Translations under genes and position numbers: made by a program
Shown here: positions 2,395 to 47,329 of the stretch, piece by piece
How positions within the stretch are numbered: the first letter of the stretch is position 1
How the letters are laid out: every line of letters begins with the position of its first letter
Assembly (NCBI RefSeq): GCF_000315625.1
Contig: NW_005434648.1
Location: 596,974-660,973, forward strand
Direction: 5' to 3'
Length of the DNA stretch: 64,000 nt
Origin: Guillardia theta CCMP2712
Taxonomy: Eukaryota > Protista > Cryptophyta
Notes under the pieces: model-generated
What the model was told of the DNA's origin: nothing
Databases searched by the model: none
Seen by the model: only the letters and a program-made list of their open reading frames with translations

Positions 2395-5300
2395 TTACAC
2401 CAGTCCCAGTTTCCATGCTAGATAAGATCGAATACTCTTCTTCGACATCTTGACGTCATCCCATTCGCTGGATGTTATCGCTACAATCTTATACCCCACA
2501 CAACTCAGCAGGTATCTCTGCAGCTTCAGCTCTCCTTGTTGACTGCCTGCTCGCCTCACTCGCGCGTTACCAGCACCAGCACCAGCAATATGCCTGTCCT
2601 CGCCGTGATACTGTATCAGCCATGTCTTGTCTCTGCTCTCCACAAACAAGTCGATGATGTAACCTGTTTGCTGGCAGATGGGGTTTTGCTGGACAAACAT
2701 CCCCATCTCATCGAGAGCTTGTGTGAGGTCTGACAGGACAGGAATTGTCTTCAACGTCCTCAAATTCCATCGTACAAAGTCCGACTTGAGGTTGTCGCCA
2801 TGAAGCGATGACAGTCTCTTGGCATCGGCACACAACTCGCTGTCGAGCTCCGGGCAGAGGCGGCAGGTGAGGAAGAAGAGGTGGAGCTTGCATCGCTCGA
2901 GGAAGGTGAAGGAGCTGAACGAGCGACAGACGGACGAGGAGATGGGGCCGAAGAGCATCTTGATCACGCTGTTACAGTGATAGAGGACGGAGATTGACCA
3001 GGCAATCTGAGCGACTTCGGAAGCCCTCAAGTCAGAGATGAGAGCTGAGACCTGTAGGGAGAGCGCAGCAATGAGGATGTTGCCCGGGTCTCGTGCAAAT
3101 GTTGCATGTGCCCAGAGCACGTTGGAGATGTCGAGAGAGTCGAAGCGGGAAGAGAACTTGGATGCAGCCAACTTCAACTCCTCGAACAGCTCAGAATGGG
3201 GTATGACCTCAGTCTTGGCAAGGGAGGCAAACATCAACGACACCTCCTTTGATGAAAGAACCTCCGACAGTTTCTGTTTGGCAAGAAGAGACCCGAGGGA
3301 AGAAAACAGGCTACTCGTCGAGAGATCGTCCAGATCGGCAAGGGCATTGAAGATGATACATTGAGTTTCTGTGTCGTACATGTCTACTCGAGATGAGATG
3401 AAAACTTGAATCCTTGAGAAGAAAGTTGCATCTGATACATCAAGCTGGGAGAGGCTGGAGACGATGCTTGCTGTCTGTTGAGCGTCGAAGTATGATAGCG
3501 ACTGCAAGATCTCCTCCTTCATGGTGTTCCATCCTGCTTCATCGAGCTTCTTTTGAGATTTGGCGAGAGCAGAACAAACTTGACAGAGAAGGTGTGAGTT
3601 GTTCTCGCCATGCAGAACTACCGAGCTTGACGAGAGAGCTTCAACTATCTCCGCTGAAGGCTCAAGTCCCATCTGTGAGAGACACCAGATGATACTACAG
3701 ACTTCATAGAAATCGTACTTGGCAAGGTGCCTCAATATCTGTCCTATCAGCTTGTCCAAGAAGAGCTGCTGCAATCGCCCATGGAAGGCTGCCATCGCTA
3801 GGATGATGTTGAGGACTGTCTTGGCACTGCAATCCTCCATTCTCCAAACAAGTTTCTCCTCCAGCGCCTTGATCGACTTGCCATCTGGCACGAAACCAAA
3901 CTTTGCAGAAGAGAAGAAGATCATGGAAAGGCACTCGGTGTCACAGGCATCATCTGCTATCGCGCGCTTCTCGAGAATGTCATGAGCCTCTGAGCTGAGA
4001 GGAAATTCAAACGACGCGAGGGCGAAGAGAAGGCGAGCGAGCAGGTTGACGTTCGCTGACGATACGTGCTCCTCCACCTTGTCTCGACACGCACCGAGCA
4101 TCTCATCGTTTGGCTTGGTAGGCATGACCTCGTAAGAGGACAAGATGCTCAGCAAATCTTGCAGAGAGAAGAAGTCTTTGAGTTCCATCGCCTTGTCCTC
4201 CAACGAATGAATGAAAGATAAATTTGGGCAACGCGGAAGAGCCTTGAGAGATATGAAGATGTCAACTAAATCTCCTCTTGACAACCTGAAGGATCTCTTG
4301 CGGATGAGATGTAAAAGAATTTCGAAGAATTCTTCATGAGAATCAACATCAAGATTGCAGATAATCCAAAGCGCAAGACAAAGACATTTTCCGTCCATAT
4401 CTTCTGTTTGCTCCAGAACTTTTTTCTTAAGATGAAGCAAACATTCTCTCCCGAGAGTGTTCCGATACACAGAAAGGGCATAGATCAGCGACAAGAATTT
4501 CATGCTCGGCAAAGAATCAATGGACTTGATTGCCCACTGCTCAATCTCATCCAACACGTTGTGGTGTGCATCTATGTTGATGCTGCAGAGACACATGAAC
4601 AAGGAGCAGATTTCCGCGTAAGAAAGGACCTCCTTCCTCTCCTCTATACTCCTTTCCAACGACTGCAGGATGACCGAGCCGGGATGATAGTCAAGACGGA
4701 CAAAGTCGTAGACGGCCTCGCAGATCTCCGAAGGGCTAAGAGAGCTCAGTACCTTGCAGGTCCTGTGCTTGATCGCCTGCATTAGCGCAGGTCCAGGATT
4801 CTCTCTCATCTCGGCAAATCCGAAAAGAAGGTCTTGCACGTCCCTGGCTGGCGCACTCGCCAAATCCGTCATGGCGCGGTCCTGGAATGCTGGCAGCAGC
4901 TTCACCCATTCGGGGCTCGCCGATCTTTTCAACGAAGAGATGAACTGAGAGGTTTGCAGCAAAGAGAACTCGTTGATACGCTGGTTTGCCTGCCAGAAGA
5001 GGATCTTCTCAGCTCTCCTTTCGTCCACTTTGTCCTCATGATCTTTATCTTGCAAAGAAAGCTGCACAAACTCACAGAACAAGCTCGCCAGGTCAACCGT
5101 ATCAAGGTGCGATTCATTCTTGATAACCCACTGACATAGACACTTGAAATCCATCGAGAACTTGTCGGTAATTTGACTAAGTCTCTCGTCCTTTCTCCAC
5201 CAGAGGTTTCTTTTGTGTTCTGGAATATCCAGATGCGAGCTACTTCTTCCCGTCAATGTTTCACAACATTCACACTGGAGCCCCTTGAGAGGGCTGACGT

Positions 5301-7407
5301 CACCTTCCCGCTCCCTCTTCGATCGACCGTAACCATCGTAAAACTTTTTCGGAGCATGGCATGAGCACAGGGGAAAGCTGCAGCCTCGCAGCTGAAACCT
5401 CTTCCTAGCAAAAGGTGCAAAAGAAAGATAGGAGTGTTCAGTGTGGTCTTTGACATCTCTAGAACAACTCTGGTGTCTGGGCGAGAAGCTGACCTTATCT
5501 GTCGGTTCTGGGTGCGAGGGGACTCCCGCAGATTGTGCAGGTGAGACCGTGAGAATGAAGTCATCCAGGCGAGACCGTTTGCCCTCGTTGCTGCTGTGGA
5601 GGGAAGACAGAGATGTGGACTTGTCGTCTTCCCGACATTTCTTGGAAGATTTCATCATGGGGTAGGAGTCAACATATCCTTCACTGCTCGATCCCGAGTG
5701 CTGTAGACCTCTGGATCGAGAATCAGCTCCAGAAGGCGCTATCTGTCGTTTCCTCTCCTGCTCTTGTTCTGTTGTCTGCTTCCACTTCCTGTCTCCTCTG
5801 ATCGGGTCGTCGTCTTTCATCGAAAACAGCCTTTCGCTGCTCGACTCGTCCTGACTGCTGTTGCTCTTTGTAGGCCTGACTGCCAGCTGCAGCGGCTGAG
5901 TGCGTTTGAGGATGAGAGAGTAGGCCACCTTGTCGCAATCAGCAGTCGCGCTCCTCTCGAGATGGAGATTGACAGGCGTACCGAACGGTCCCACCACCTT
6001 CATCTTGATAACATCTCTGCAGCTTCCCATGCAGCAGAAAGAATCTACTCGGAGCAGCTTGTCTCCCTCCCGGATCAGGCCCGACTTCTGGGCAGGGCCG
6101 GAGGGATGGATTGAGTCGACGTAGCAGCACTCAGTCGCTCCAGGGTCAGCGGGAGCAAGAGAAATCCCAACTCCATAGCAGATTTCAGCACCTCTTATTC
6201 GGCGAGGCTTCTGGTCAACAAGGCTACTCTCACTGCCTTTGTTGTTGTCCTCTCTCGAATCTTTAACGGTTTTTTCCTTAGAGAAGAGAGAGCCACGTGC
6301 CTGGTTCACTTCATGAGACTGATCAGATTTTGCAAAGAATTCTTTTCCCTCAGAGTCGTTCAGCAGGGGATCTGCTGTCTTAGAAACGTTCGGGCCCGAT
6401 GAGGAAATTCTGTCACAACCAGAATCTTTTGGCATGTAAGCATCTCTTTTTCCTTGCTGAGAATGTATCTGTGCTTTGCCTTTCATCTCCACCTCTTCAA
6501 GGGTGTTCAAATCCCCGACAGCCTTTTCCTCTTTAGCGTGCTTGGAGGATGCTTTTCCATTTGAAATCTCGTTCTCATCCTTTTCAATACCATCCTGGTT
6601 CTGCCTCACTTCATCACGTTCGTCAATGCTCTTTGAGGGGATGCAAGTTTCGTTCTGCTCTTTCTTCAAGGGCTCCTTGTCTTTCGACGCTCTCAAGCTT
6701 GGAATCTCTGTGCTTGTTTCTGCATCCGGCTCTACCTCGAGTAGTTTTGCTCTGCAATGAGCTGCAGTTGCCATTCCAAGATGCGGTTCTGGAGCAGATT
6801 GTCCAGCGACTCCTACCGTCTCCGAGCTCTGACCAGCTCTGGCTGGAACACTCATGCTAGCAGCTTCATGGCATTGACGTTTGCTGCTCTCAAACCTCTC
6901 GGAGCTCTTTCGATTATCTTCTGTTCGACTTCTTTTCTTGCCGTCCTTATTCAGGTCATCTCTATCTCCCGCCTTGCTTTTCATCTCCTGCCGATTTCCG
7001 TCCTTGCTCAGTCCCTCCTTCTCCAGCCGACCCCTGCTCTCTTGCGACCTTCGCTCTTGTCGCCGACGCTCGTCATTCCACCATCGCTCAGCCTCCCTTG
7101 ACCGTTCGTCATGCTGCCGGCGTTCTTCTGGCCTTTCCCGATCTTCGTGTCTTCCTCGATCCTCTGCTCGAAAGAAACCTTCCTGTCGTCCTCGCTCGTC
7201 TGGTCGCCACCATTCCCCGTACTGTCGGCTCTCGTTGTAACGACGGTGTTCGTCCTGCCTGAACATCTCTCGTTGCCACAGCGTCTCTTCCAACCTCCTC
7301 CAGTCTTCATGCCATCGTCTATCCATATGTCGCCATCGCTCTTCATGCGAGCTTCGTTCCTGCCCTCGTCGCCATCCCGGCGTTCCCTTCCAGCTCCGCT
7401 CCTCCAT
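2395..7407 (-). CDS. 1670-aa intronless protein: R/E-rich N-terminus, PDZ domain, OPR/FAST-like helical repeats, C-terminal RAP domain
   Basis: Single 5-kb ORF. PDZ-like segment YGVGISLAP...VDSIHPSGPAQKSGLIREGDKLLRVD...VVGPFGTPVNLHLER (~5955-6180). Helical repeats such as FDSLDISNVLWAHATF and LSPSEICEAVYDFVRLDYHP. RAP-like end GYIIDLFV...LIQYHGEDRH...LQRYLLSCVGYKIVAITSSEW. Confidence 0.85.
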   Translation of the reverse strand: MEERSWKGTPGWRRGQERSSHEERWRHMDRRWHEDWRRLEETLWQREMFRQDEHRRYNESRQYGEWWRPDERGRQEGFFRAEDRGRHEDRERPEERRQHDERSREAERWWNDERRRQERRSQESRGRLEKEGLSKDGNRQEMKSKAGDRDDLNKDGKKRSRTEDNRKSSERFESSKRQCHEAASMSVPARAGQSSETVGVAGQSAPEPHLGMATAAHCRAKLLEVEPDAETSTEIPSLRASKDKEPLKKEQNETCIPSKSIDERDEVRQNQDGIEKDENEISNGKASSKHAKEEKAVGDLNTLEEVEMKGKAQIHSQQGKRDAYMPKDSGCDRISSSGPNVSKTADPLLNDSEGKEFFAKSDQSHEVNQARGSLFSKEKTVKDSREDNNKGSESSLVDQKPRRIRGAEICYGVGISLAPADPGATECCYVDSIHPSGPAQKSGLIREGDKLLRVDSFCCMGSCRDVIKMKVVGPFGTPVNLHLERSATADCDKVAYSLILKRTQPLQLAVRPTKSNSSQDESSSERLFSMKDDDPIRGDRKWKQTTEQEQERKRQIAPSGADSRSRGLQHSGSSSEGYVDSYPMMKSSKKCREDDKSTSLSSLHSSNEGKRSRLDDFILTVSPAQSAGVPSHPEPTDKVSFSPRHQSCSRDVKDHTEHSYLSFAPFARKRFQLRGCSFPLCSCHAPKKFYDGYGRSKREREGDVSPLKGLQCECCETLTGRSSSHLDIPEHKRNLWWRKDERLSQITDKFSMDFKCLCQWVIKNESHLDTVDLASLFCEFVQLSLQDKDHEDKVDERRAEKILFWQANQRINEFSLLQTSQFISSLKRSASPEWVKLLPAFQDRAMTDLASAPARDVQDLLFGFAEMRENPGPALMQAIKHRTCKVLSSLSPSEICEAVYDFVRLDYHPGSVILQSLERSIEERKEVLSYAEICSLFMCLCSINIDAHHNVLDEIEQWAIKSIDSLPSMKFLSLIYALSVYRNTLGRECLLHLKKKVLEQTEDMDGKCLCLALWIICNLDVDSHEEFFEILLHLIRKRSFRLSRGDLVDIFISLKALPRCPNLSFIHSLEDKAMELKDFFSLQDLLSILSSYEVMPTKPNDEMLGACRDKVEEHVSSANVNLLARLLFALASFEFPLSSEAHDILEKRAIADDACDTECLSMIFFSSAKFGFVPDGKSIKALEEKLVWRMEDCSAKTVLNIILAMAAFHGRLQQLFLDKLIGQILRHLAKYDFYEVCSIIWCLSQMGLEPSAEIVEALSSSSVVLHGENNSHLLCQVCSALAKSQKKLDEAGWNTMKEEILQSLSYFDAQQTASIVSSLSQLDVSDATFFSRIQVFISSRVDMYDTETQCIIFNALADLDDLSTSSLFSSLGSLLAKQKLSEVLSSKEVSLMFASLAKTEVIPHSELFEELKLAASKFSSRFDSLDISNVLWAHATFARDPGNILIAALSLQVSALISDLRASEVAQIAWSISVLYHCNSVIKMLFGPISSSVCRSFSSFTFLERCKLHLFFLTCRLCPELDSELCADAKRLSSLHGDNLKSDFVRWNLRTLKTIPVLSDLTQALDEMGMFVQQNPICQQTGYIIDLFVESRDKTWLIQYHGEDRHIAGAGAGNARVRRAGSQQGELKLQRYLLSCVGYKIVAITSSEWDDVKMSKKSIRSYLAWKLGLV

Positions 7408-10689: not shown

Positions 10690-13020
10690 TTGATCATCGC
10701 TAACCAGCCCATGGAGTCTCTATGCGATGGGTTCTTGAGCTGCAATCACCATGTCAGGGTATGGGATGGGATGACTGCGGGTCCTTACCGTCCTCCAACA
10801 GTCCATGGCATCTTGGCATGAGGGCCTAAGAATCGGATCAGCATGGCCGCGGAAGTTTGACAGGAAGGGGACCATGTAGCCGAAGGACTCTTCCTCTGCT
10901 CAATCCCTTGGAGACCCCATCGTAAGGAAGTCCTTCACATGCTGTCAGTGCGACACTGGCATTCTGGTACTCACCGTGCAAGAGATCTTCTCTTCCATCC
11001 TCTCCGTGCGGGAAAGGACAGTTCCCCCTCCTGTCACGCCAGTTACACACTTGTGAGGAGAGGGGCGACGAACCAGCAGCCGGGTCTGAGGTTGACCGGC
11101 GCTCCCTTCCTCTTGTCCTTTCCAAACCTGCACGGATAGGATGAGCTAGAATGATAGACCCTCCCGACATCACGTCGTCACGGTTGAGGATTGGTTGGGC
11201 TTGCTGTTCACGATGTGGCTGTAGGGTTAAATGCTGAGCTCCTCTTACAACCGCTTCTCTTGCACACCTTCCCTTCTGGGGCCACTTCTTGGCCCCCCAG
11301 CCATCGCCCACGATTCTTGCGGGCGCAAAACCATCGGCGACGGGATGGTGTCTCTCCGAACAGTTCGTGGGGCCATTGCGCATCGATCCTCTGATTCCGC
11401 CTGGTTGATCTTCAGAGACTGAAGGAACTTGATCAGTGCAAGTCAAGCAGCTGACCTGGTTCAGCCCATGCGTTGTCTTTCCACATTCTCTTGAGCCAGC
11501 GTCCTCCCTGTCCGAGCGTCAGCTGGCCTGGTGGTGGATCTCGACATGTCACCTCCTGTTGAAAGAGCCCTCCTTCCCCAAACTTCCTTGCTGCTTGTCG
11601 GTTTCCCCTCCTTTCCTGCAAATGCATCAACGTCGCTCATTAATCTATTGGTTCACCTGGACTTCAAACATCGACCTCAGCCCGTTAATCACCAGCTTCT
11701 CTCCCCTGCATACCGATGTCAAAAGACTCTTCAATCGCTCGCCTCCTTGGCATTCCTTCCATCCACTTGCGGTGGATTCTTCAACCTCGCCACCACCGGT
11801 CGATGCGTGTCGTTGGGCTCTGGCCATTCAGGCTGCTCGCAAGTTCAGAGACCGGATACATAAGGCATGTAGCACAACATCCCAAGGAGGCTCTTCGGGC
11901 AGAATATTCCTGTTTACAGGTCCTTCGAAGTGAATCAGCGGGCCTCGATTGATCTCCCCCTACCGCCACATTTTAATCTTCCAAAACAAAGGAAAGATAT
12001 TTCGCGCACCTGCCCAGTGTACAGAGGTCTGGTCCGTCGTAGATCTGCACTGTGCGGTCTTGTTTTCCCGGGATAAAGATTTTGTATCTGAAAAGTGGCT
12101 ACAATCAATTGTTTCGCAGCAAGGACCGAGGTAATGTTCGGGTTGCAAAACCTCCTCCTCGCGTTTTCTTCACCTGTCCTCTTGCTGTCCTTGGTGGATA
12201 ATTTGCACCAGCAGATCGAAAGGGAATGTAATTCTCCTTATCCTCACGTACCCCTCTCCGCATCCATGTGGCCGTTGAGAAACCCATGCCTCCGTTCAGG
12301 TTGCGGTACAATTCAATCTCCTAATCATTCTCCAGTAAGCTCTCACTAGTGCTTCTTCACTTCTCACCTTTCGCTTCTTCTCGGCAGCCCTGTCTACATG
12401 TAGGGGCTTGCAGAGCGTCATCAATAGAACAATGAACAGCAGTGAAGCTTGTCTACCTGATGTTTGGTCAGAGGAAACCCGATCATCTCGCGGGTGTGAG
12501 CGCTGCTTCTTGGTCTGTTGTAAGCGATGTCATCGTTTGCATCCCAAGCCATGGGCCTCGGATCATAGTGCACTGTGTCCAACCCATAGTTATCAGCTCC
12601 TACGACGTAGAATTCCAGCGCTGGTTTTCTGGGATCTGGAGGATCTCCGTATCCATGATGACCATGTTTTTCAAGGAGGATGCCGTCCATCTTTGCCTGG
12701 AAGATTTCAGTCAATTCATGCAGATTTGTTATTTCTATCATCACACGTACACAGCAATTGTGAGTATCTAGAATCCCCTGCACAGTTTTGCTCTCAACAC
12801 TCCAGCATCCGCATAATGCGCATGACAGGCTCTCTTTTCATGCACAACGATTACTTCTCCCGTTCATTCTTTCCTCTATCCTGTTTCTTCTCCTTCTGGA
12901 CTCTGCTAGCTTGCTCTATACACCAATGAAGCTCCATAATCTCCTGCTGCTGCTTCGTTTCTTCTTCATATTCTCGTTCTCATGCCCCTGCTCTCCTGCT
13001 CTTGCTTTCATGCCGCACCA
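10690..13020 (-). pseudogene. Decayed coding-like region of unknown origin
   Basis: Minus-strand fragments with splice-like boundaries (10780-11130). Frameshifted or stop-interrupted protein-like frames (EYEEETKQQQEIMELHWCIEQ...; ORF 12421-12783). No coherent gene or recognisable domain. Confidence 0.3.
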
Positions 13021-13304
13021 ACGGCTCCAAAAACAAATCCTTGTAAAAGTTAAAAAACTATTTCGCGGCACCGTTTGTGATGCGGGCGGCCCAGCAATCT
13101 CCCACTACAGTCAAATACATCTCCAACAGTGATAAGTAAAATAAATACTATTGCCCTCGCATTATTATGGTACAAATGATTTCCATTTCATAAAAAATCT
13201 TGGTACTTGAATGATTGGTCAAAATGGATTCTTAGCTTGTTTGAACAGCGAACGAGAGGCGATGACGATGATAGCTGACAGAACCTGCTGAGAAGCGACA
13301 GAGA

Positions 13305-16300
13305 ATGGCAGATAGGAATCAATCTGCAGAACAACAGCAACAGACAGCAACTTGTCGGATGGTTTCTGAAGACGTCTTTGAAACTTTAAATTTGAAAGGA
13401 AACCTCTGCAAATCGGTATCATCCAGCTCTTGCAACTGTAGTATGTCTATCCACTTAGATCAAGTGCAGAGCTTGATCGCTTCAGATTCAGTTGAGACAG
13501 GTTTGTTAGAGATGTATTTCTTGAAATTCATCGTCAGCTTCAATGCGAAACTCCAAGATCCTAACCAGGAGATTCTCACACGACTGTTGAAGACTACAAT
13601 TCCTGCTGATGGAGTTGAAATCGATCCAAGAATCATGTTGCGACTATTACAAATCAGCAAGACATTCAGGTTTCGACGTTCTACTTCCGACATTGTCTTT
13701 CAGCAGAGCCAGGAGGAGATTCGTGGTCTTCTTGAGCATTGCATACAACATCTTACCATAGCTGCTAAAAAACTATCCAACAAGATAGGCAGCGACCTTA
13801 TCGTCATCAACAATGCTCTTTACAATGCAACAGTCATCAAAGATGTCCCGGAAGGCATGAAGAGTCTTGAGAGACAACACACGTTAGTGAGGAACAAGTC
13901 AAGGGAGATCCTGTCAAAGATAGAAGGATCAAGATGTGGTAAGAGTGAAGATTCAAAGTGGCTCGCCCAACGTGGGTTGTCCTGGTGTTTGCATCGTATT
14001 GCAGAGTGCTCCACACAAGACGAAAAACTTGCAAACACCCTACGACTTGTTTTTATTGAATCCTATAACGAGCTGGTTCTTTATCAGCCTGATGACTGTG
14101 CTTATATGAGCAAAGATACCTGTCGAACTTGGTTGCTGGAAGTTCTGGAGAACTTGAAACAATGCGCTGCGCAATCAACAAAAGCTTGGGCGATTTGTTT
14201 TGCTTGTTTCGAATTCATGCTGAATGCCAGCTATCGCTTTCCAGCTTTGCAAGAAGATTGCATCGAGTTTTTAGAGTCGCCTTTAGAGATCACCGACGGC
14301 AGCATGTTTCAAGGATTGAAATCATGGATCTCGCGTGAGGAGTTTTCTGTCGGTCTGATTCGTTGCAAGATGATCGAGGTTTTAATACAACTAGCTTGCT
14401 GGGGCGCAGAGAAAGTGAAGAATCAAGCTCAGCAAGTTCTTCATCGTCTACGAAGCCACTCAAAGGCTTACAGTGCAGTGATGGCTGGTCTAGAGGACAG
14501 CTCGGATGAGTATTGCAAGGTTTTGATGACTCCTGAAGCAGCGCAATGTGGGGTCATCAGGTTCTTCAAGAGTGCCTTCGAAGAGGTAATTGCAGACAGA
14601 AGCGTTGCAAACAAGACGGCAATACAAGCCCTTGTACAAAAATTGCACATTAAACATTTTGAAAACACAAGGAGTGTTTTTGAAGTCTGTCAATATCTTG
14701 ATTTTCATATTTCTTCAAAATCAGAAATGAAGCTGCGCAAGTTCCTGAAGAAAGTCTTTTATTTTGAGTTCAGACAAAGCTATTTCACAGTCTTGTGGTG
14801 TCGACTCTGGATTGCTGCATTCTCCGGCTGCTTTCCAGACATCAGAATGCCAGAGAACTTTCTTCGGCCTCTGTCCTCCAAAGTGGATTTACCTGAAGCC
14901 AACACAAGCCTTATGCCTGGAAATTTTCCTTACTACCATTTATCTGGTCCCGATCTGTTGGGTTCTCGAAACCAACAAACTATGACTTCGATGAGAGAAT
15001 CGGGCATCCCACATAACATGAAAGAACCCTTCATGTCAACATCCATAGATGACGGAAAACACGAGTCTACTCCAGTTGAGCTCATGCGGATCAAAGAGAA
15101 CGTCTCAACAACCCTCGAATCCTGTTGTGGTACTTCTCTACAATATGTCTCAGAGATGGAAGCAGTTTCGACGAACACAAATTTGAAAGCAAGAGTTTCA
15201 ACAGTCGGTGTGACCCTCAGCGAAAATGAAACAGAAGAGGTTCGCAGAAGCATTGTCAGAATCCAAGAGTTGATTTCGCACAGCAACATTAATCAGAATG
15301 ACTTTCAGCACGGGAAAAGAAATGTGATCATCCTTGGCGTGACAGGAAGTGGCAAGAGCACGTTAGTCAACAGTCTTGCTGGTTGCAAACTTCGTTGTTT
15401 GACGATAGAAGAATCCCTTGCGAAGCATCTCAATCCTTTCCCTCCCGCCCTCTGTGTTGTTCCGGTCAGTGAAGGCGGCCCTCTTGACGCGGTTTCAGAC
15501 ATCGGGTTAAGTCACGACACGTCGCAGACTGAAGTCTTGATGCCCATCAGCCTGAGAGGAGAGTCTCTGGTCCTGTGGGATGCTCCTGGCTTCGAAGACA
15601 CCAAGGGCTCCGAGGTCAACATCGCCAATGCAGTCAACCTCACCAAGCTGCTGGAGCTGTCGAGAGATCACGGCATCTCGATCCTCTGTGTGCTTGACGC
15701 TGAGTCAATGTATGCTGCCAAGGGTTCTGGAGCCCACAGGACGATACGCATCCTCAAGAATCTATTTGGAGGAGACGAGGAGAGAGTCAGAGAGAACTTT
15801 GAAAGCATCGTGTGGTGCTTGTCAAAGGTTAATGAGCAATGTCCACTGAAGATAGGAAGAACTCACTTGACGAAATTTCTTGCAGACAATGGGATGAGCA
15901 CAAGTGAGAAGCAGAACTTGATTCATATCTATGATCCCTTAGAACGACATCACGATGGAATCAAACGATCTGACTTGATCGCGTTGCTGCAGTCTGTTCC
16001 TCCTGTTGTAGCAGATGAAAACACATTTCAGACTCCCCTCAATGACACCGACAAGCTGTTAGTTTCAAAAATAGCTAAGGTGGTGAGCGAAGATGTTGTA
16101 GAAGCAATGCAAGCAGGCAGGTTCGATCAAGTCAAAGAACAATACCACACATTTCAAAGCTTGAATGTGATACGAAACCAAGAAATTGACCAGAATAAAA
16201 TCAGAATCCTTGGAGAAATCACTGAAACAGTCAGGAAATGGGAAAATATCATCAAAGAATTCAAAGGAGACTTCTCGACTGCAGGCAGGGAAACTTTGAG

Positions 16301-19300
16301 AAAGCATGTCAAGTTATTCAAAGCTGCTGAGATCTTGGACGAGATCGTGGAGATGAACGTTAGACTTCGGTTAGATAAATGTGTCGAAGACATCCACAAT
16401 CATGAAGCACAGAAGCAGCACAAAGAAAATTTGGAGTTGAACAGGTTATTTTCAACATGCTCTGCTTGTTTCAAGAAGAAGATGAATGAGCTTGCGGTTT
16501 CAAATCCTCATCGTACTTTGAAGCTTGATGTGCAAAGAAGCATGGAAAACTTGTTGAAGGAATTTCCTGATGTTGAAGAAGTTCAGAAATTCTTTGATTT
16601 TTTCTCCATAGCAAGAAGAGTTTTGCAACAAAGAAACTCAATCGAAAATTTTCTGTTTGGAGATCAGACATACCTTGCAATAACGATTCAGCTATACGAA
16701 AAAAATGTGAAGAAACTTTTCAGCGAAGTTGTGGGCTTTAGCAAGAAGGCAATCTTATTGCAAGAATGCGACGAAGCCCTAAGACAATTACGAGAGAATG
16801 CTCTCATCGTTGTGGAAAGAGATTTTGAGTCTCTATGGAAGCAGGAAATTGACGTCTCTGCCACCCCCACGGTCAGTCTGATTCTTCGCTTCGCCATCAT
16901 CTGACGTGTACACTTTACGCGCAGGTGAAGAGCTTTCAAACTTTCAACGTGTGGGAATCGCTCGAATCATTGCGATCAGAATTTCCAGAATCTTACGATA
17001 TCAAGTGTAAAGAATTGCAAAACATCTATAGAGAAATCCATGAAGCTGCTTTTTATCACAAGGGTGAGGAAATTGTCAATGACATTACTCGTTTTTTGGC
17101 GGATGTCCGTGAGGCCAATAGGAGCGAGCAGGACAAACTGATCTCTAGCATCAACGAGTTGAGAGAGCTTGATGGAGATTCTCGTCGTTATAAACGTCAG
17201 ATTTCAAATATCACTGAAGGCCTGCAACGGTTGCACAATGAAAATGAAATTCATGACCTCATTGAAAGTAAACAAATCGGCAAGGTGATAGATCGATACG
17301 ATTCCTTGGTGCATCTCTCTCAGGGCCTCGAATCTCATCTTGTCGTGGATGTCAGCGCAATCAAGAAGACAGTCTCAAACTGGATGACTATGATGCAGGA
17401 GAATTCGTTGGAAGAGATTGATCGAGACATCAAGGAACCAAATTACCTGCAGCTTCAACATCTCAACCAATTCTGGCAAGCATATACATCACTGCGGGCG
17501 AAACCAGATCTTATCATATCAGATGAGACGCTTGAGGAGAGGGCATTAAAAAGACTAGAGTCAAACATCAAGAATGTGCTAGATATTCTTCAACGACCAC
17601 AACATTTCGGGGGGATTTGCAATGTCGGGGAGATGGTTGCAAAACTGTTGATCAAGAGCTTTGGGGTCTCTGAAGTACTTGGAATGGTGGAGAAATTCAA
17701 GACATTCGTATCACAAGATTTGCTGGATCGATTGCAGTCTAGCGAAAAGTACAAGGCTGGTATCTCATTGAAGGATTACATTCGTTCTCAATCATCAGAT
17801 GAAATTGTTCGTATTTCTCAATCAATCCTCTCAACTTTCCCTCAGTTCGAGATGTTCAGCATTGAAATGTTCAACGAGAAAGCTTCTGGTATGAAGTTCG
17901 AAGATGCGTTGATGAGGATGCAATGTGAACCCGGTGACGATGTCAACAAAGATTTGCTACGGTCCTGCTATGAGGCTTACAAACAAACTTACGATTCTGT
18001 TGTGAGAAAAATCATCAGCAACCGCGACAATTATCAGAGAGAGAAAAAATCATATCTAAAGCAGATCCAAGACATCTCAAACAAGCTTCAACCATATGCG
18101 CACAGCCTGTCTCAGGCTCCTCAAGAGCTCGGAAGCTTACTCGGTTACATTTGCGGGCATTGGACCTTCATGTCGATCCCTGAGAATCAGATTGGAGTTG
18201 AGAGGAGCAGAGTACGTCAGCCTCATGACACGCAGATCCTGGGAATTCTTCGACTCCTCGGGGTTGATCAAGATCGAATGCTGAACCATCTCATTCAAAT
18301 CAACACGGGTGAAGGCAAGTCGATCGCTATTGGTTTTACCTCCGTCGTCCTAGCTAAAATAGGCTTCTTCGTAGATGCTGTTTGTTACAGTAAGTACCTT
18401 TCAGAACGCGACAGAAGGGCGTTTGCTGACCTTTTTCGAGAGTTGGAGGTTCAGGAGTATATCACATACGGTGACTTCAAGGACTTGTCAAACATGATCA
18501 TGACGGATGAAATCTTTCCCGATGACTTCCCGGATGTCAGGAAAACTTTTCTCAACTGCATACGAGGAGACGAAGAGAACGAGGGAGTCACTTCTTCGAG
18601 GAGGGGGAGACCGTCAGTGTTGCTCATGGATGAGGTCGATGTTTTCTTCGGAGACAAATTTTACGGCCACACTTATGATGCTCGCCAGCGATTGGATGCT
18701 GGTTTCAACATCCTCAAATATGTTTGGGACAATCGTCATCGTCTGAGAAGCGATGCTGGATCCATCGAAGAGCTCTTGTCTCTCAAGGAGACAGAGGATC
18801 TGTTTTCGAAGTATCCTCTCCTTTCACAAGATCTGCTCGAGCGCGAACTGAAAGAAATACTCGACTCAGTAGCATTGTTCCCTGTGGGCTCAAAACCACA
18901 TTTGGCAGCTTATCTGGACTACATCGTTGACAAGGAACGTCAATTGATTGGATATATCGATCCTCAGAGCGGCATCCCATGCTACAACATAGGTTATTGC
19001 TACATTACAGCTTTCACTTATTTGTATTGTTCCGAATCAAGTTTGGAAGGAATCGTTCTAGATCGGATCAAGCACATGATGACGATTCAACCAAGGTGTG
19101 GACGGCTACTCTACTCGCAGATCCCGAAATGTTACACATACTGTCTGGGAATGACAGGGACGCTAAATTGCCTTGATGAAGCTCAGATTCACTTGCTACG
19201 AGAGTACAACTTTCATCATAAGACATACTTGCCCTCTACGTTCAGTAAGAAGGAAATTGAGATGAGGGAGATGGAAGTGATAGTCGAAGACTATGACAGA

Positions 19301-19945
19301 TTCTTCGTGCAGGTGCGAAAAGAGATCGAAGAGATGCTCAGAAAAGGCAGAGCAATAATCATCACGTTTGCGACTCAATCGTCCCTGGATAAGTTTGCAG
19401 AGAAGCTCATGAACGAGAAGCCGAATCTGAACCAGTACAAAGGCTTCAAGACCTTGTCTGACAGTCTCGGTCTCGAAGAGAGGCAAGAGATAGTCAATCA
19501 TGCTACTCGCCCCTTCGCTGTCACCTTGATCACAAGGTTTTACGGTCGAGGGACGGACTTCGCATGCTTCGATCAAGCCTTGGTGAGGGCGGGCGGAGTG
19601 CATGTCGTAGTTACGTTTCTGCCAGAAGACAACTCTGAAGCTAAGCAGATTCTTGGTCGAACATGCCGACAAGATGATCCTGGGTCTGCAAGGTTCATCC
19701 TCTACGAACAAGACCTGAAATACTTGGGAGCAAACCACGTGGAAAAGGAATCGTCGGGGAAGGACTGGTTACCCTATCTCGAGATGAAACGAGCGGAGAA
19801 GTTGAGAGCAAAATACCAGAAGCTCGAAGAAAAGCATCATCAAGGTACTGAGGTTCACAAGAAGACTCTTGCTGTTGTAGAATTAGTCAAGAGCCACAAT
19901 TTTGACCAAGCACAACAAATCCTTCTAGGGATGGTACGGTATTAG
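13305..19945 (+). CDS. ~2195-aa P-loop GTPase + SecA-like SF2 ATPase fusion, two exons (13305-16871, 16925-19945)
   Basis: A phase-0 53-nt intron at 16872-16924 (GTCAGT...CTGAC...GCAG) joins the two long ORFs. GTPase motifs: G1 ILGVTGSGKST (~15336), G3 WDAPG (~15576), G4-like CLSKVN. SecA-type motifs: QINTGEGKS (~18296), YLSERD, MDEVD (~18626), GMTGT, GRGTD and QILGRTCRQ. Confidence 0.9.
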
Positions 19946-20116
19946 CAGCTTATGCTGCCGACTAAGGGATTGCCACCTTTGATTCAGATTCAGAGATCGA
20001 ACAAGTCGGATTTCATACTTGCTGATTCAAACGATAAGGATATTCTCCTGAGCTGCTTTGATTCGGGCAAAGCGATGCCAAAACAATCCAAGAAGCTGGC
20101 GCAAGAACTTGCATTG

Positions 20117-20129
20117 CTTCTTCTTCTTC

Positions 20130-20172
<43 letters not shown>

Positions 20173-20241
20173 GCATCAGCATCAGCATCAGCATCAGCAT
20201 CAGCATCATCAAAAGCAACATCGTCGTCGTCATCGTCATCA
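20117..20241. repeat. Compound microsatellite (CTT)n(CAT)n(CAGCAT)n
   Basis: Directly visible, between the 3' ends of two convergent genes. It generates spurious poly-H/D/M/I ORFs. Confidence 0.95.
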
Positions 20242-20430
20242 TTTACGTTTTCCAATCAAATCATCATTGTTCCCTGCAAGATCATCATCCCCATCATCGT
20301 CATTATCCCCATCTTGTCAGCGTTATTATCTTCTTTTTCTTTCACAATCATCATCACCTCTTTCTACTCCTTGTCTACATCGTTCTAGTCGATTGCTCTT
20401 GTATCTCAAGCACACTTCATTAACCTACAT

Positions 20431-23400
20431 CTAGACGACGAGGCGAGGAGTAGAGTTGGAACTTGTGAAAGAGCAAGCGAAAAAAACGATTTGTTTCTGT
20501 TCATTCTTTTTACATATCTTGAAGATGAAGTCAGTCAGTGGTAGAATGCAATGAGCTTCACACAAGATTGAATTGCTTCTTCTCAACAACCGTTTTTGCC
20601 CTTCTCTCATCAGCACGTATTCGAGGAATTTCTTCTCCTGCATTCAAGTGACTCAGCAGAAGTCACACGAGGCTGCAGGTTTCTCACCTTGCAGCAAGAA
20701 ACGTTTCCATTGCTTCTCGTGCATTGAAACAGCTTTCTCACGTGCAGACTGCAAGCGAAGAAGCAGGTTCCGCTTCAAAGTCTCGTTGCTAAACGGCCGG
20801 CTCTGTAAAAGATCTCTCGGGGTATCAGAACCATATGACAACATCTTGTCCTCCCCCCTACCATACAACCGTCAGCCTGCAGCAGGAACAGCAGCAAGAG
20901 AATACCTTGAGCTGTGATAGAAGAGCGATTGCTTGATGGAGAGGTCTTGTGGTGGAAGATACAAGCTTCTCACGTGTGGGGTTTTTAACTCGCTGCCGCA
21001 TTGACAATTCTCAAGAGACAACCAAAGAGCATAACAATCGCGTTCAAGCTTCTTCCATCTTTTCACGTTGCATGTTTTGCCCAGGGCAACTAATTTGTTT
21101 TGCACCTCTTTTTTTATGAGAGTTGTTTGCGTTCCTGATGAAATCCTTTCTGCGAATTTCAAATTGATTTCTTCTTGACTTGTGAAGTCAATATATGTCA
21201 GATCTGTTTCAAGAAGAGATAATTGCTGTATCAAGGCTTCTAAACCACTCTTTAGATGATTTTCATGATGCGAATCTGAGTCACTATCCTTTCTTGGAAC
21301 CATCTGTGCATCATGCTTGATTTCACTCTCTTCTCTCATTCGCTGCTGCAGGATCATCTCATGATATCGCACTTCTGCTAGCTCAAGAGCCTTGTTTTTG
21401 TCCTCAATGCTCAAATCTCGCTGTCGAAGTGCAAACAGATAATCTTCGTACACTGATCTGCATTCCAGTGTCGCTGCCTCTGCTTGCTTCTTCCAGTAAT
21501 TAATCTCAACATCTTTCTCACTGATTTCTTGCTCGTGCTTCAGCAATCTTTCATCTCTCTCCATCAAGTTCCGTTTGAGAGAGGATATCATTGAATTCGC
21601 TGCCTCGCGGTCCAGCAGGTTCTGGCTTCTCTCATTCTCCAAGATGTTCTTGTAGCTCATCAGATCCGACTGGGTGTGATTCAGCTGATCTCTCAAGCCA
21701 CCAGCCTCAACTTGCAGACGCTGAATGTCCTGCAGGAGCTCATTCTTGCAGTGTGAATAATCTCTCTCCAACGCCATGTAGTTCTGCTCACACTCCTCCA
21801 GCTTCTCGATCAAAGTCTTGCTGCTCCTGTCCAACACCTCCAGCTTCTCCACCTGCCACTCGAACAGCAACCACGAGCACAGCATCGCCTTCTCACGAGC
21901 CGACTCGGCGACGCCCTCCTCCCCTAGGACGATGTTTCTGAGGGGGGACCACACGCCCGTCATGTACAGCTGGAACCTGACCTCTTGCACGGTCATCAGG
22001 CACAGCAACGTGTGCAGGCAGTGCTCGAGAAGCATCTCTCCTTGCTCTCTCGACCACTGTTCGAGCACCCTGACGAGCAGGTCGGGGAGGTGAAGTTCGA
22101 CAAGGGGGATCTTGATCTCGTCCACCTCTGCCAGCCTGCTGAGAGTCTGAAGACGACTGAGCGGCGACCAGGTGATTCCTGCCCATATAATCCCATCGAG
22201 AGCACATTGCAAAGTCCACACGATTGTTTTCAAGGTTGAGATGTCAGGTAAGAATGGGAATTGCTGTTCTTCTGGAATCAGCTTGACGACGATCTCAAAG
22301 ATGCTGGCAATGGTACAGGAGACCTGTTCTGATGGATGTTTGATATCTTCTGATTGCTGGATCAGGGGCAGCAAGAGGTCTTCTAGTACTCTCCTCCTCC
22401 TCAGCACCTCTCTGCTCCGCCTGTTGGAGGTGAAGAGAATGAAAAGACCGATGATAGAATCTATCACGGCCACACGAGTCTGTGAGAAGGTTTCCAGCGA
22501 GGCCCCAGCTGAGTCATGCATCTCGTTCATCAGGGTGAGCTCGATGCTGCTCATGAGCTCATCGTAGCTCACGATGTCGTTGCATGCTCGAGAGCTGACC
22601 CAAGCACAGTTGTTCAGCGTTCGCAGAATGGCGATCTGCAGATCGCACTTTGACTCGTAACTGAGGGCGTTGAAAGCAAGAAATCGTCTCTTTAAATCGT
22701 CTTCCTGGTTCTGCATCGGACCTGAAGGAGCCAAGTTGTCATGCTGCTTGAATTTGACCTCGATGAACTCCAGGAGGTGGGCGAGAGCTGAGAGCAAGCT
22801 GGGGCTCCTACACTCCATGATCCTCAGCGCGTTACGAGAGTTGTTGAAGGCGACTTGACTCAGAGCCTCGCACGCGTGATAGATCGCGTTGGGGCTTCCA
22901 CTGCGAATGAGCCGCTCACATCCCTCGAAGAAGGTGGGAGTCGCTCCGATAACTTCTCGGTTGACAGCTGCCTGCGGGTTTGAAGGGACGCACAGGTCGC
23001 ACAAGCCTTCTGCTCCACTCGTCGCCTCGTCCATGTCGTCAAACCAGAGCTGGGAGACGAGGTCGCGGATCGATCGGTATCTTCCTCCTCCCGTGTACAT
23101 CCCGCTACTCACATCTCCTCGCATCGAGAAGAGACCTGACGTTCCACTCGCTGCAGCTCTGACCTGCTTCGATTCTCTCAAGTGTCTGCAACGCTTTCAG
23201 TTCCAAACCATTCTCCCAACTGACAGACCCTTGCGATCTCGGCATCTCTTTCCCATCAATGTCTTCGTTGCGAGCTTCTGGCTGGTACACCTTCGACAGC
23301 AGGTCAAGAGCATGCCACCATGAGCATCACTGCTCTCACTCCTCGATCCCCAGCTACATGCACACGCGCTGGGATCGCCGACCTCTCTGCTTGGAAGTCT

Positions 23401-45211: not shown

Positions 45212-47329
45212 CTAGATCGCACACAGTCTACTTGTATGCAACTTCCTCAAAAGTCTCCTCCTGTGATACTTGTTCTTCATGCCGAAGTCGTTGAGAAGAT
45301 CGTGCTCATTCAGCTCCATGAGCATCTCCCCATCGATCCTGTTCTGCTTGAAAGCATCGCAGTATTCTTTCAGTTCCAGCTCTACAGGACAAATTTCAGA
45401 TATGCGCACAAATGAGAAATAAAAATCTTCCTCACCTGCGAGCCAATTGACAACTTCTTCCACGGAGAAGCTCTCAACCCCTTTCGAGGAGAAAGCAGGA
45501 GCTTCTGATGACCCGGACGACGGAGAGGCCTGACCTCTTTCTGACAGCACAGACTCCGACGAGGTCGAATGGCTCGCCAGGACTGTCGAGCGATGAGACA
45601 GAGACTGAGTTGAAGAGCTGCTCCCTCCGGACAGCCGCTTCGAAACCGTCTCGTTCATCTCCTGTGGTCGGTTCATCGCCGATTTCTTCGCTCGCTGGTC
45701 CGAAGTCTGCATGAAGTGAAGAGAGAAACATCCCCTGGCATTCGAGCTCTTCACCGAGAAGCCTCCGACATTCGCGCACGTCCGCATCGCCTTCGGCTCA
45801 GGCACCCGCCTCTCCGAGGCAGGCTCGCCATTCCTTGACTTCTGCTCCACCTCGACTGTTGGTGGATCCTCACGCCCGCGTCTCCCACAGTCTGAGGACT
45901 CGGCAACCTGTTCATCGCAGGCATCCCCCAACGGAAGTTGCTGCCTCGCCAGAAAGACATGATAGGCGCTGACTTCGTCTGCACAAGACTCTATGTCCTC
46001 ACTGTCGTAGTCTGTGACGAAAGCTCTCTCAAACTCCAACCTGACCAAGGAACCTGCACGTCCCACGATCTTCTTGCGAACGTCGTCGAGAGACAATCCA
46101 TCCACCAGCTCCCCATCTACCTTGAGCAGGACATCCCCGATTTCAATCTTCCCACACTTCGAAGCTGGGCTCCCCACGACGATCTCATCAACAATGCAGA
46201 GTCCATTTTCGGGCTGGATGAAGAACAGCCCAACCCCAGCCCTCTCACTCAGCTCCATATCATTGTGCACGACGTCGTTTGCTCGTCGTCTTTGCTTGAT
46301 TTTGTCAAGAATCTCCCACTGCAAACGAAGAGTTTCCTGACAGATCCTTTCTGCTTTTGTAAGTGGTTTCCTGACCTCTCCATAGCTGTCTCTGGCATTC
46401 TCGTCACCATTCCCACTTTCTCTCGGCCTTGCCATTTGCATCTCTTCCTCCAATTCTTCTCCATTCTTGTCAGCTGAATTCCGATATCTTGAGTTGATGA
46501 ACATGTCATCCCTAGAGTATTGCATCTGCAGTGACGATCTCGGCACCCCTCGCACAATCATGGTGTTCCCCTCACGAGGTAAACTCCTCGATCTTTGCCT
46601 GCTAACCCCTGTACGAGAATGGTCAAACCTAACAGCACCTCTCCAAGGCGAAATCAAACCTGGTGAATGGACTTCCTCGCATCTCGAAACTCTCTCTTGC
46701 TCAAGGTCGAGTTCCCCATGATGATGATTGTTTGAATTCTGCTCGAGAGGCGCCTTGTCCGCATACAAGCGATGAATATGCTTGTTCACTTGTAGAAACT
46801 TGGTGAGAGCTGTACATTGCTTGTCATTGCAATGTCCCAGTACTGTGTTGATGTACGTGTGCAACCCAGTCTCTCTCGTTCTTGTCACATTCAAAAACAT
46901 AGAAAACGGAATCTTTGCGGGAAGCTCGGCCTTGACTTGGCCATATCGAGAAAGACGACTATGCAAAGTAACAAAATCATTAAACCTTCGCTTCACGTTC
47001 CAGCAGATTTCATTGTCTCCTCTCATGACGCACAACATGTTGTAAGCCTTATGTTCGCTGCCATTTTCATCTCTTTCCGTGGTTGCACGAGTACTCATCA
47101 CATGCAGAGCTCTGATCCCGTCCCCACCCGTTGGATGGGAACTTCCGCAGAGGAATACCTCTTTCGCGCCTGTCGACTGCATTGCCAGAAATCTACAAGA
47201 GGATATGAAGGTAGCTCAACAGCCTCTGACGAGACGAGAACTTTGATCACATCAGCATCACATCTGCTCCTTCGTCTTCTCTTCTTTCATCTTCTTCCTG
47301 CCCATCTTCACGGCCCTGCCTTCCACCAT
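45212..47329 (-). CDS. PX + PDZ + SAM domain protein
   Basis: PX: WNVKRRFNDFVTLHSRL...ELPAK...RETGLHTYI. PDZ: AGVGLFF...VDEIVVGSPASKCGKIEIGDVLLKVDG. SAM: FSVEEVVNWL...EYCDAFKQNRIDGEMLMEL...LLNDFGMKNKYHRRRLL. Likely 54-nt in-frame intron at 45382-45435 and a short first exon ending near 47260. Confidence 0.85.

Follow-up and report, generated by a model that had tools for sequence, protein, structure and literature searches.

The window analysed here, a stretch of 64,000 nucleotides (nt) from the 87.1 Mb, 669-contig genome of Guillardia theta CCMP2712 (C26:596974-660973), contains a two-exon nuclear eukaryotic gene at positions 13305-19945 which encodes a soluble protein of 2195 residues. In this protein, a TRAFAC-class GTPase domain is joined by a long stalk to a C-terminal module of 607 residues that is specifically SecA-like, SecA being the motor which drives proteins through SecY. 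The GTPase-stalk-SecA-like core defines a conserved family of hundreds of giant proteins, which occurs in protists, in some animals and in bacteria that live inside cells. The explanation that best covers all results, with a probability of roughly 0.5, is that the protein would be a SecA-derived, GTP-gated polypeptide motor with a possible role in conflict between hosts and their symbionts or pathogens. The initial annotation of the window had proposed a GTPase and SecA-like fusion acting in immunity or conflict; its domain reading was largely confirmed and its interpretation was partly supported.

The structure of the gene is supported by comparison with its relatives. Read without splicing, a first open reading frame (ORF; 13305..16904, plus strand) of 1199 residues ends at a stop inside the intron (16902-16904), and a second (16925..19945, plus strand) gives 1006 residues when read alone. 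When the 53 nt at 16872-16924 are excised, codon 1189 is followed in phase 0 by codon 1190, and the resulting frame of 2195 codons has a single terminal stop. A GT..AG intron interrupts both intact paralogues at the corresponding codon, in the same phase, with a length of 57 nt on contig C50 (in frame, with a TGA inside) and of 56 nt on contig C34, and the match of the window protein to both of them breaks at the identical residue. The exon flanks of this shared intron were conserved (..SATP[TS] before it and V[KS].FQTF.VWE after it), while the intron sequences of the three genes were unrelated. GTPase and motor were also found within one ORF, in the same order as in the window, in 68 of 157 fetched relatives, and in two continuous ORFs of other organisms (P0039 and P0007) one HMMER domain spans the junction and is free of indels there. 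A phmmer search with only the 190 residues flanking the junction gave no match among the fetched relatives; the junction is spanned only inside longer collinear alignments.

Two genes, one for a GTPase protein with its end at 16904 and another for a separate SecA-like protein whose start lies beyond 16925, would agree with the considerable length of each ORF and with the lack of junction-spanning reads reported below. Against such a division stand the intron site and phase common to two diverged paralogues, with exon flanks kept and intron sequence not, and the homologues that hold both halves in one continuous ORF alignable over the junction; moreover, the second ORF has no nearby ATG and its first listed start is a GTG at the acceptor. 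Two genes are therefore very unlikely, and on comparative grounds the fusion of GTPase and motor, with the intron proposed by the initial annotation, was established short of a cDNA. In the probable RNA assemblies X1 and X2, small contigs lay within both exons and none over the junction. Run X3 behaved as DNA, being unbroken over the intron, and its contigs contained the locus; X3 is possibly the source sample of the assembly itself. One X3 contig was a base short in a C5 run at window position 16864, just 5' of the splice donor. The missing base probably reflects a homopolymer error in sequencing, as the paralogues support the reference frame.

The motor module was examined by profile and structure searches. 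In Pfam, it matched SecA_DEAD at 31.8 bits (cut-off 24.6) and P-loop_SecA at 31.4 bits (cut-off 27). The NCBIfam models of SecA and SecA2 matched at E 1e-17, the SecA2 models best, with 60 bits against family cut-offs of 725-1085. In an alignment of 12 motor sequences (A1), the elements TGEGKS, C-Y-x-x-Y-L-x-x-R-D, D-E-x-D-x-F-F, T..L (motif III), P-x-T-x-x-K, G-R-G-x-D-F and Q..G-R-T-x-R-Q were invariant, and the profile of A1 matched SecA and SecA2 only among 177,635 sequences of the PDB. When A1 was compared with five canonical SecA sequences by hhalign, a probability of 99.7 and E 8e-26 were obtained over 431 collinear columns, PPXD included, in which the SecA hairpin Y-V-V-K..V-x-I-V-D-E-x-T-G-R was paired with Y-I-V-D-K-E..I-G-Y-I-D-P-Q-S-G of the family. 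The AlphaFold2 (AF2) model of the motor (predicted local distance difference test, pLDDT, 84; predicted template modelling score, pTM, 0.81) gave SecA at all of the Foldseek ranks 1-36 (E 1e-19 to 8e-12), followed by DinG and UvrB at 6e-8. An insert of 155 residues lies at the PPXD site, and the VIA aligned length rose from 337 (motor only, 3bxz) to 511 (6itc). The protein ends about 60 residues past nucleotide-binding domain 2 (NBD2), as most family members do, and the Pfam scan found neither a SecA_SW nor a SEC-C match; the wing domain, the two-helix finger and the C-tail are absent. On this evidence, the C-terminal module consists of NBD1, a PPXD-like insert, NBD2 and the first scaffold helix.

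In this way, the superfamily 2 (SF2) module of the initial annotation was identified as a SecA-type motor by the PDB profile search, Foldseek and hhalign alike. A nucleic-acid-dependent SF2 ATPase, in which the SecA-like module would act on RNA or DNA as a GTPase-gated helicase or a RIG-I-like sensor, is rather improbable, since SecA stood far above the helicases in every sequence and fold search and the SecA-specific motifs and the PPXD-site insert were kept.

Compared with SecA and SecA2, the window motor has the SecA versions of motifs I, Ia, II (DEVD), III (GxTGT), V (GRGTD) and VI (Q..GR..RQ.DPG), a domain inserted at the PPXD site and a long helix beyond NBD2, and SecA was its top match by profile, Foldseek, VIA and hhalign. 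The differences are an identity of about 17%, the C-terminal position of the motor in a protein of 2195 residues, and the lack of the wing domain, the two-helix finger, the C-terminal linker, the zinc tail and a targeting peptide. No hydrophobic leader was detected in the first 60 residues (maximum Kyte-Doolittle 19-residue score 0.44), and no transmembrane (TM)-like segment in the window protein. A canonical SecA is encoded elsewhere in the genome (C232:38810-42913; L025:1-2883:-, a locus that stops before the gene end; SecA_DEAD E 3e-122). Its N-terminus is signal-peptide-like and continues with Phe and a transit-like stretch, and this SecA is nucleus-encoded and probably plastid-targeted. 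In a motor tree of 69 sequences, built by a quick method and showing long branches, the family formed a clade with support of 100 whose stem measured 3.15 substitutions per site; five canonical SecA sequences (C232 included) and two SecA2-like sequences lay outside it, and the three copies of G. theta formed a clade with support of 99.

The window protein is not the Sec translocase, because it is without wing domain, two-helix finger, C-tail and targeting peptide and because the genome holds a separate canonical SecA; the initial annotation, which had regarded a plastid translocase as unlikely given the C-terminal motor and missing targeting peptide, was right in this. The best NCBIfam matches, being SecA2 models, would fit a divergent organellar SecA paralogue of SecA2-like type that serves a plastid or periplastid SecY channel. 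The score of 60 bits against cut-offs of 725-1085, the lack of leader and TM segment, the C-terminal motor with finger, wing domain and tail missing, the clade distinct from both SecA and SecA2-like sequences, and the leader-bearing SecA at C232 make this exceedingly unlikely.

The GTPase domain (residues 640-905) was modelled at a pLDDT of 87, and the first 15 Foldseek matches of the model were GIMAP7, GIMAP2, GIMAP5, GIMAP4 and GIMAP1; its longest VIA alignments were with Toc34 and GIMAP2 (182-190 residues). Invariant in the GTPase alignment A2 were G-x-x-G-x-G-K-S-T (G1), S-x-T (G2) and D-x-P-G (G3), with the family motif N-I-A-N-A-V-N. G1, the G2 Thr and G3 are held in common with GTPases of the GIMAP/AIG1, Toc34/33 and EngB/Era types. 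Pfam MMR_HSR1 matched 20 of 20 family members and AIG1 matched 8 of 20, all below its cut-off (18.9 bits against 27 for the window domain). Of the TRAFAC-type GTPase with IRG/AIG1/GBP-like flavour that had been suggested, the TRAFAC fold was confirmed; the domain is a TRAFAC-class GTPase nearest to GIMAP, Toc34 and EngB, with no single subfamily assigned. The same GTPase type was also observed without the motor in other large ORFs of the genome, on C126 (a head-to-head pair), C3 and C7; the matches at C126:158933-164016 and C3:1106436-1107161 had E 1e-33 to 1e-35.

The distribution of the family was revealed by a HMMER search of 1.84 billion representatives, in which 571 proteins were found at E<=1e-30, many of them 2000-3700 residues long with the motor C-terminal. 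Family members have the motor signatures TGEGKS, CYSxYLSxRD, DEVDVFF, GRGTDF and GRTCRQDDPGS and the GTPase signatures GxTGSGKST, DxPG and NIANAVN, and the window protein has both this signature and the domain order. A single-protein query of the genome contigs found no relatives, and an alignment-based scan was needed to find them. The labelled bacterial members came from metagenome-assembled genomes (MAGs) of 2.1-2.6 Mb belonging to Legionellales, Parachlamydiaceae/Chlamydiae, Margulisiibacteriota and Gammaproteobacteria, with several copies in some. In the Chlamydiota sample, 2 of 151 genomes gave a family match (E<=1e-30), so the family is sporadic there. The N-termini of the bacterial members carry ankyrin repeats, leucine-rich repeats (LRR), SidM_N or DUF294_C, of which ankyrin, LRR and SidM_N are modules typical of host-directed effectors.

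The eukaryotic members included an MMETSP transcript, EukProt entries, a haptophyte VWFA protein and a rotifer protein, with many fusions to a von Willebrand factor A (vWA) domain and two PARP clusters. Hypothetical proteins annotated as 'SecA DEAD-like' or 'VWFA domain-containing' in Calcidiscus leptoporus and Brachionus calyciflorus have the same SecA-like module (E 1e-33 to 1e-64), and many of them end in a vWA like the C50 and C34 paralogues, whereas the window copy has no vWA and a lineage-specific N-terminus. SecA-DEAD protein clusters in the Atlas were most frequent in Chordata and Arthropoda; these are known as cluster summaries and are likened to the family by the SecA-like module only. 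Domain shuffling, which the initial annotation had proposed to count, was observed around a common core, with vWA (C50 and C34), PARP, ankyrin, LRR and SidM_N termini. The closest non-paralogous clade includes two metagenomic proteins of about 1190 residues (P0004 and P0182), in which a PARP catalytic domain (PF00644) accompanies the SecA-like motor.

Several further observations were made at the bacterial loci. In two unrelated MAGs, one of Chlamydiae and one of Legionellales, a gene for an AAA_14/DUF4143 ATPase follows the giant gene within 2.5 kb on its 3' side (L012 17305-18465 and L013 12002-13192), and a Fic-domain gene lies upstream in L013; the proximity of both may be coincidence. One Chlamydiae chromosome of 2.05 Mb (G003:C1) encodes a canonical SecA, a SecA2-like gene of 921 residues and several giant ORFs (1420-3483 residues) with SecA_DEAD matches, one of which alone matches the family profile at E<=1e-30.

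Within the genome studied, the motors of the intact paralogues were 60% (C50) and 52% (C34) identical to that of the window protein. Both paralogues end in a vWA domain (C50, L007 2350-3060, minus strand; C34, L008 2679-3122, minus strand; VWA_4 E 2e-11 and VWA_2 E 4e-11) which the window copy lacks, and no vWA remnant was found 3' of its stop. A broken fourth copy (C145:117148-121029, L009), with motor and GTPase pieces in different frames and a TGA, is a pseudogene as judged by its reading frames. Among the paralogues dN was 0.31-0.46 and synonymous sites were saturated (pS 0.70-0.83), so that dN/dS was not estimable; no arms-race rate was seen.

The similar architecture in Chlamydiae and Legionellales MAGs raises the question of bacterial contamination or a recent transfer of a symbiont gene without host function. 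A spliceosomal-type intron is common to paralogues on three scaffolds, the neighbours of the gene are eukaryotic (for example, a PX-PDZ-SAM protein), its nearest relatives are fragmentary eukaryote-like ORFs and not bacterial ones, and the frame of 2195 codons is intact with every catalytic motif present, all of which leaves such an origin with scarcely any probability.

Both nucleotide-binding modules retain their catalytic residues, and the motor is truncated relative to SecA. For a SecA-derived polypeptide motor, the following mode of action may be proposed. The GTPase would serve as a nucleotide-gated switch or assembly module. The DEAD motor, with Walker A, DEVD and arginine-finger motifs intact, would spend ATP on gripping and moving or unfolding a polypeptide, in the cytosol or at a membrane surface and independently of SecY, with a clamp-like insert and without the channel-directed finger. 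The variable ends would pick the target or partner; this would be the task of the N-terminal region in the window protein, of vWA in the C50 and C34 paralogues, of PARP in the close relatives and of ankyrin, LRR or SidM_N in bacteria. In conflicts of hosts with symbionts or pathogens, the eukaryotic proteins would be a cellular machine and the versions of Chlamydiae and Legionellales would be deployed in host cells. A role in immunity or conflict is plausible on circumstantial grounds, because of the paralogues and pseudogene, the vWA, PARP, ankyrin, LRR and SidM_N partners, and the occurrence of bacterial members in host-associated lineages only. More specifically, a cytosolic SecY-independent descendant of SecA could act in eukaryotes as a GTP-gated machine of cell-autonomous immunity that grips or unfolds polypeptides and is directed against intracellular bacteria or viruses, shared with Chlamydiae, Legionellales and similar symbionts that would have captured or donated it and would inject it, with ankyrin, LRR or AMPylase heads, to act on proteins of the host; this fuller version is put forward tentatively and has a distinctly lower probability.

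A housekeeping function is also to be considered, namely a large cytosolic NTPase for membrane remodelling, organelle biogenesis or protein quality control without special link to conflict, in which GTPase and stalk would act in a dynamin- or atlastin-like manner, with the motor pulling proteins out or unfolding them. The long stalk after the GTPase, the conservation of catalytic motifs over very long times, the old and conserved paralogues and the broad eukaryotic occurrence are consistent with this. By contrast, the patchy distribution, the lineage-specific paralogues and pseudogene, the shuffled terminal domains of conflict type (vWA, PARP, ankyrin, LRR and SidM_N) and the very low RNA in culture argue against it, and both this function and its proposed mode are considered unlikely.

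A number of results weigh against the GTP-gated conflict motor preferred here. The G4 base-specificity motif was degenerate in A2 ([ST][KRQH]xx against the expected [NT]KxD, with Asp in 1 of 20 sequences), which makes GTP specificity uncertain. Pfam SecA_PP_bind did not match the window protein, and the retention of PPXD is suggested by profile alignment and partial superposition. No RNA read was seen to cross the junction: raw RNA run X7, of which about 6% was read, gave 4 reads on 13000-18999, all inside exons, and 0 reads across 16872-16924, a yield too small to speak for or against splicing, and RNA of the gene was very scarce in the runs examined. The paralogues appear to be old, with no sign of an arms-race rate in their sequences. 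The motor tree did not resolve the base of the family, nor, consequently, whether transfer went from eukaryotes to bacteria or the other way. No conserved operon partner of the bacterial members was seen at the loci examined, the A1 scan of viral contigs found no relative, and the PADLOC defence models gave matches at the P-loop level only (LeoBC at E 1e-4, mad8 and mad3) and none for the SecA-like part. Finally, keyword searches of the literature found no paper characterising the GTPase-stalk-SecA-like family and no published function for its members.

Three published cases resemble the family in part. Both domain types, as a GIMAP-type GTPase and a SecA-like helicase-related domain, are also listed for host-directed effectors of Amoebophilus, an intracellular symbiont of amoebae (Zhang et al. 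2012, PMC3482391), the likeness being one of description only. In its sections on these effectors, that paper counts both domains with the variable C-terminal modules and describes no GTPase-stalk-SecA-like core and no eukaryotic members. In Legionella fallonii, lfa2470 [SecA DEAD-like], similar by annotation only, is listed as acquired from eukaryotes (Gomez-Valero et al. 2014, PMC4256840, Table 5), and a 2026 preprint reports 20 giant Omnitrophota proteins with PF07517, likened by this Pfam label only.

The window protein couples a GTPase permanently to a SecA motor that has an apparent substrate clamp but none of the parts by which SecA docks on the channel and extends into it. Provided that the motor still acts on polypeptides, the SecA engine would have a second use that does not depend on the channel. 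The family would then represent a new class of large NTPases in eukaryotes, perhaps with immune functions, and the bacterial ankyrin, LRR and SidM-type fusions would be candidates for a new type of effector; should the immune-machine version hold, the two parties to an ancient conflict would have a new class of protein-remodelling motor in common. Testing the family is easy, since each of its two enzymatic modules can be expressed on its own and culturable algae carry it.

The features of the gene are given in Table 1. Each motif quoted by the initial annotation was found there exactly once, at the expected place.

Table 1. Features of the GTPase-SecA-like gene and its 3' flank (window coordinates)
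Feature	Position	Strand	Basis or remark
Exon 1	13305..16871	+	codons 1-1189; ATG at 13305; ~10 open codons 5' of ATG
Intron	16872..16924	+	53 nt, GT..AG, phase 0
Exon 2	16925..19945	+	codons 1190-2195 and TAG stop at 19943-19945
N-terminal region, residues 1-639	13305..15221	+	no Pfam family, signal peptide or TM segment
TRAFAC-class GTPase domain, residues 640-905	15222..16019	+	G1-G3 motifs, predicted fold
GVTGSGKST (G1)	15336-15362	+	motif search
G2 Thr in SQT	15522-15530	+	GTPase domain
WDAPG (G3 DAPG)	15576-15590	+	motif search
NIANAVN, family motif	15618-15638	+	GTPase domain
LSKVN, degenerate G4	15819-15833	+	contains SKVN
Linker/stalk, residues 906-1588	16020..18121	+	intron-interrupted; 41% E/K/Q/R/L
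SecA-like NBD1, first part	18122..18661	+	TGEGKS, YLSERD, DEVD
TGEGKS, Walker A	18305-18322	+	motif search
YLSERD	18395-18412	+	motif search
DEVD	18629-18640	+	motif search
Insert at SecA PPXD site	18662..19126	+	profile alignment to PPXD; Pfam SecA_PP_bind no match
PPXD-type hairpin Y-I-V-D..I-G-Y-I-D..S-G	18920-18973	+	profile comparison
Rest of NBD1 (GMTGT) and NBD2	19127..19756	+	PSTF, GRGTD, QILGRTCRQDDPGS
GMTGT	19148-19162	+	motif search
GRGTD	19544-19558	+	motif search
QILGRTCRQDDPGS, both arginines present	19646-19687	+	motif search
Predicted long helix (~42 residues) and short helix, start of SecA helical scaffold	19766..19936	+	AF2 model
Non-coding tail with microsatellite	19946..20440	.	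no vWA remnant

The N-terminal 639 residues were common only to the C50 paralogue (38% identity), and the Atlas feature search gave just sub-threshold ARM/HEAT/TPR-like leads for them. The order of the linker was conserved among relatives and its length was variable, C50, C34 and P0001 having about 350-450 extra residues near the junction (about 450 in C50 and C34, after the shared intron). Directly 3' of the gene, a CTT/CAT/CAG microsatellite (window 20110-20240) gives in-frame His/Gln runs beyond the stop. The neighbouring ORFs are ordinary eukaryotic genes, among them that of the PX-PDZ-SAM protein (45215-47182, minus strand) and an ORF of 1670 residues (2398-7407, minus strand) with weak PDZ and FAST_1 matches.

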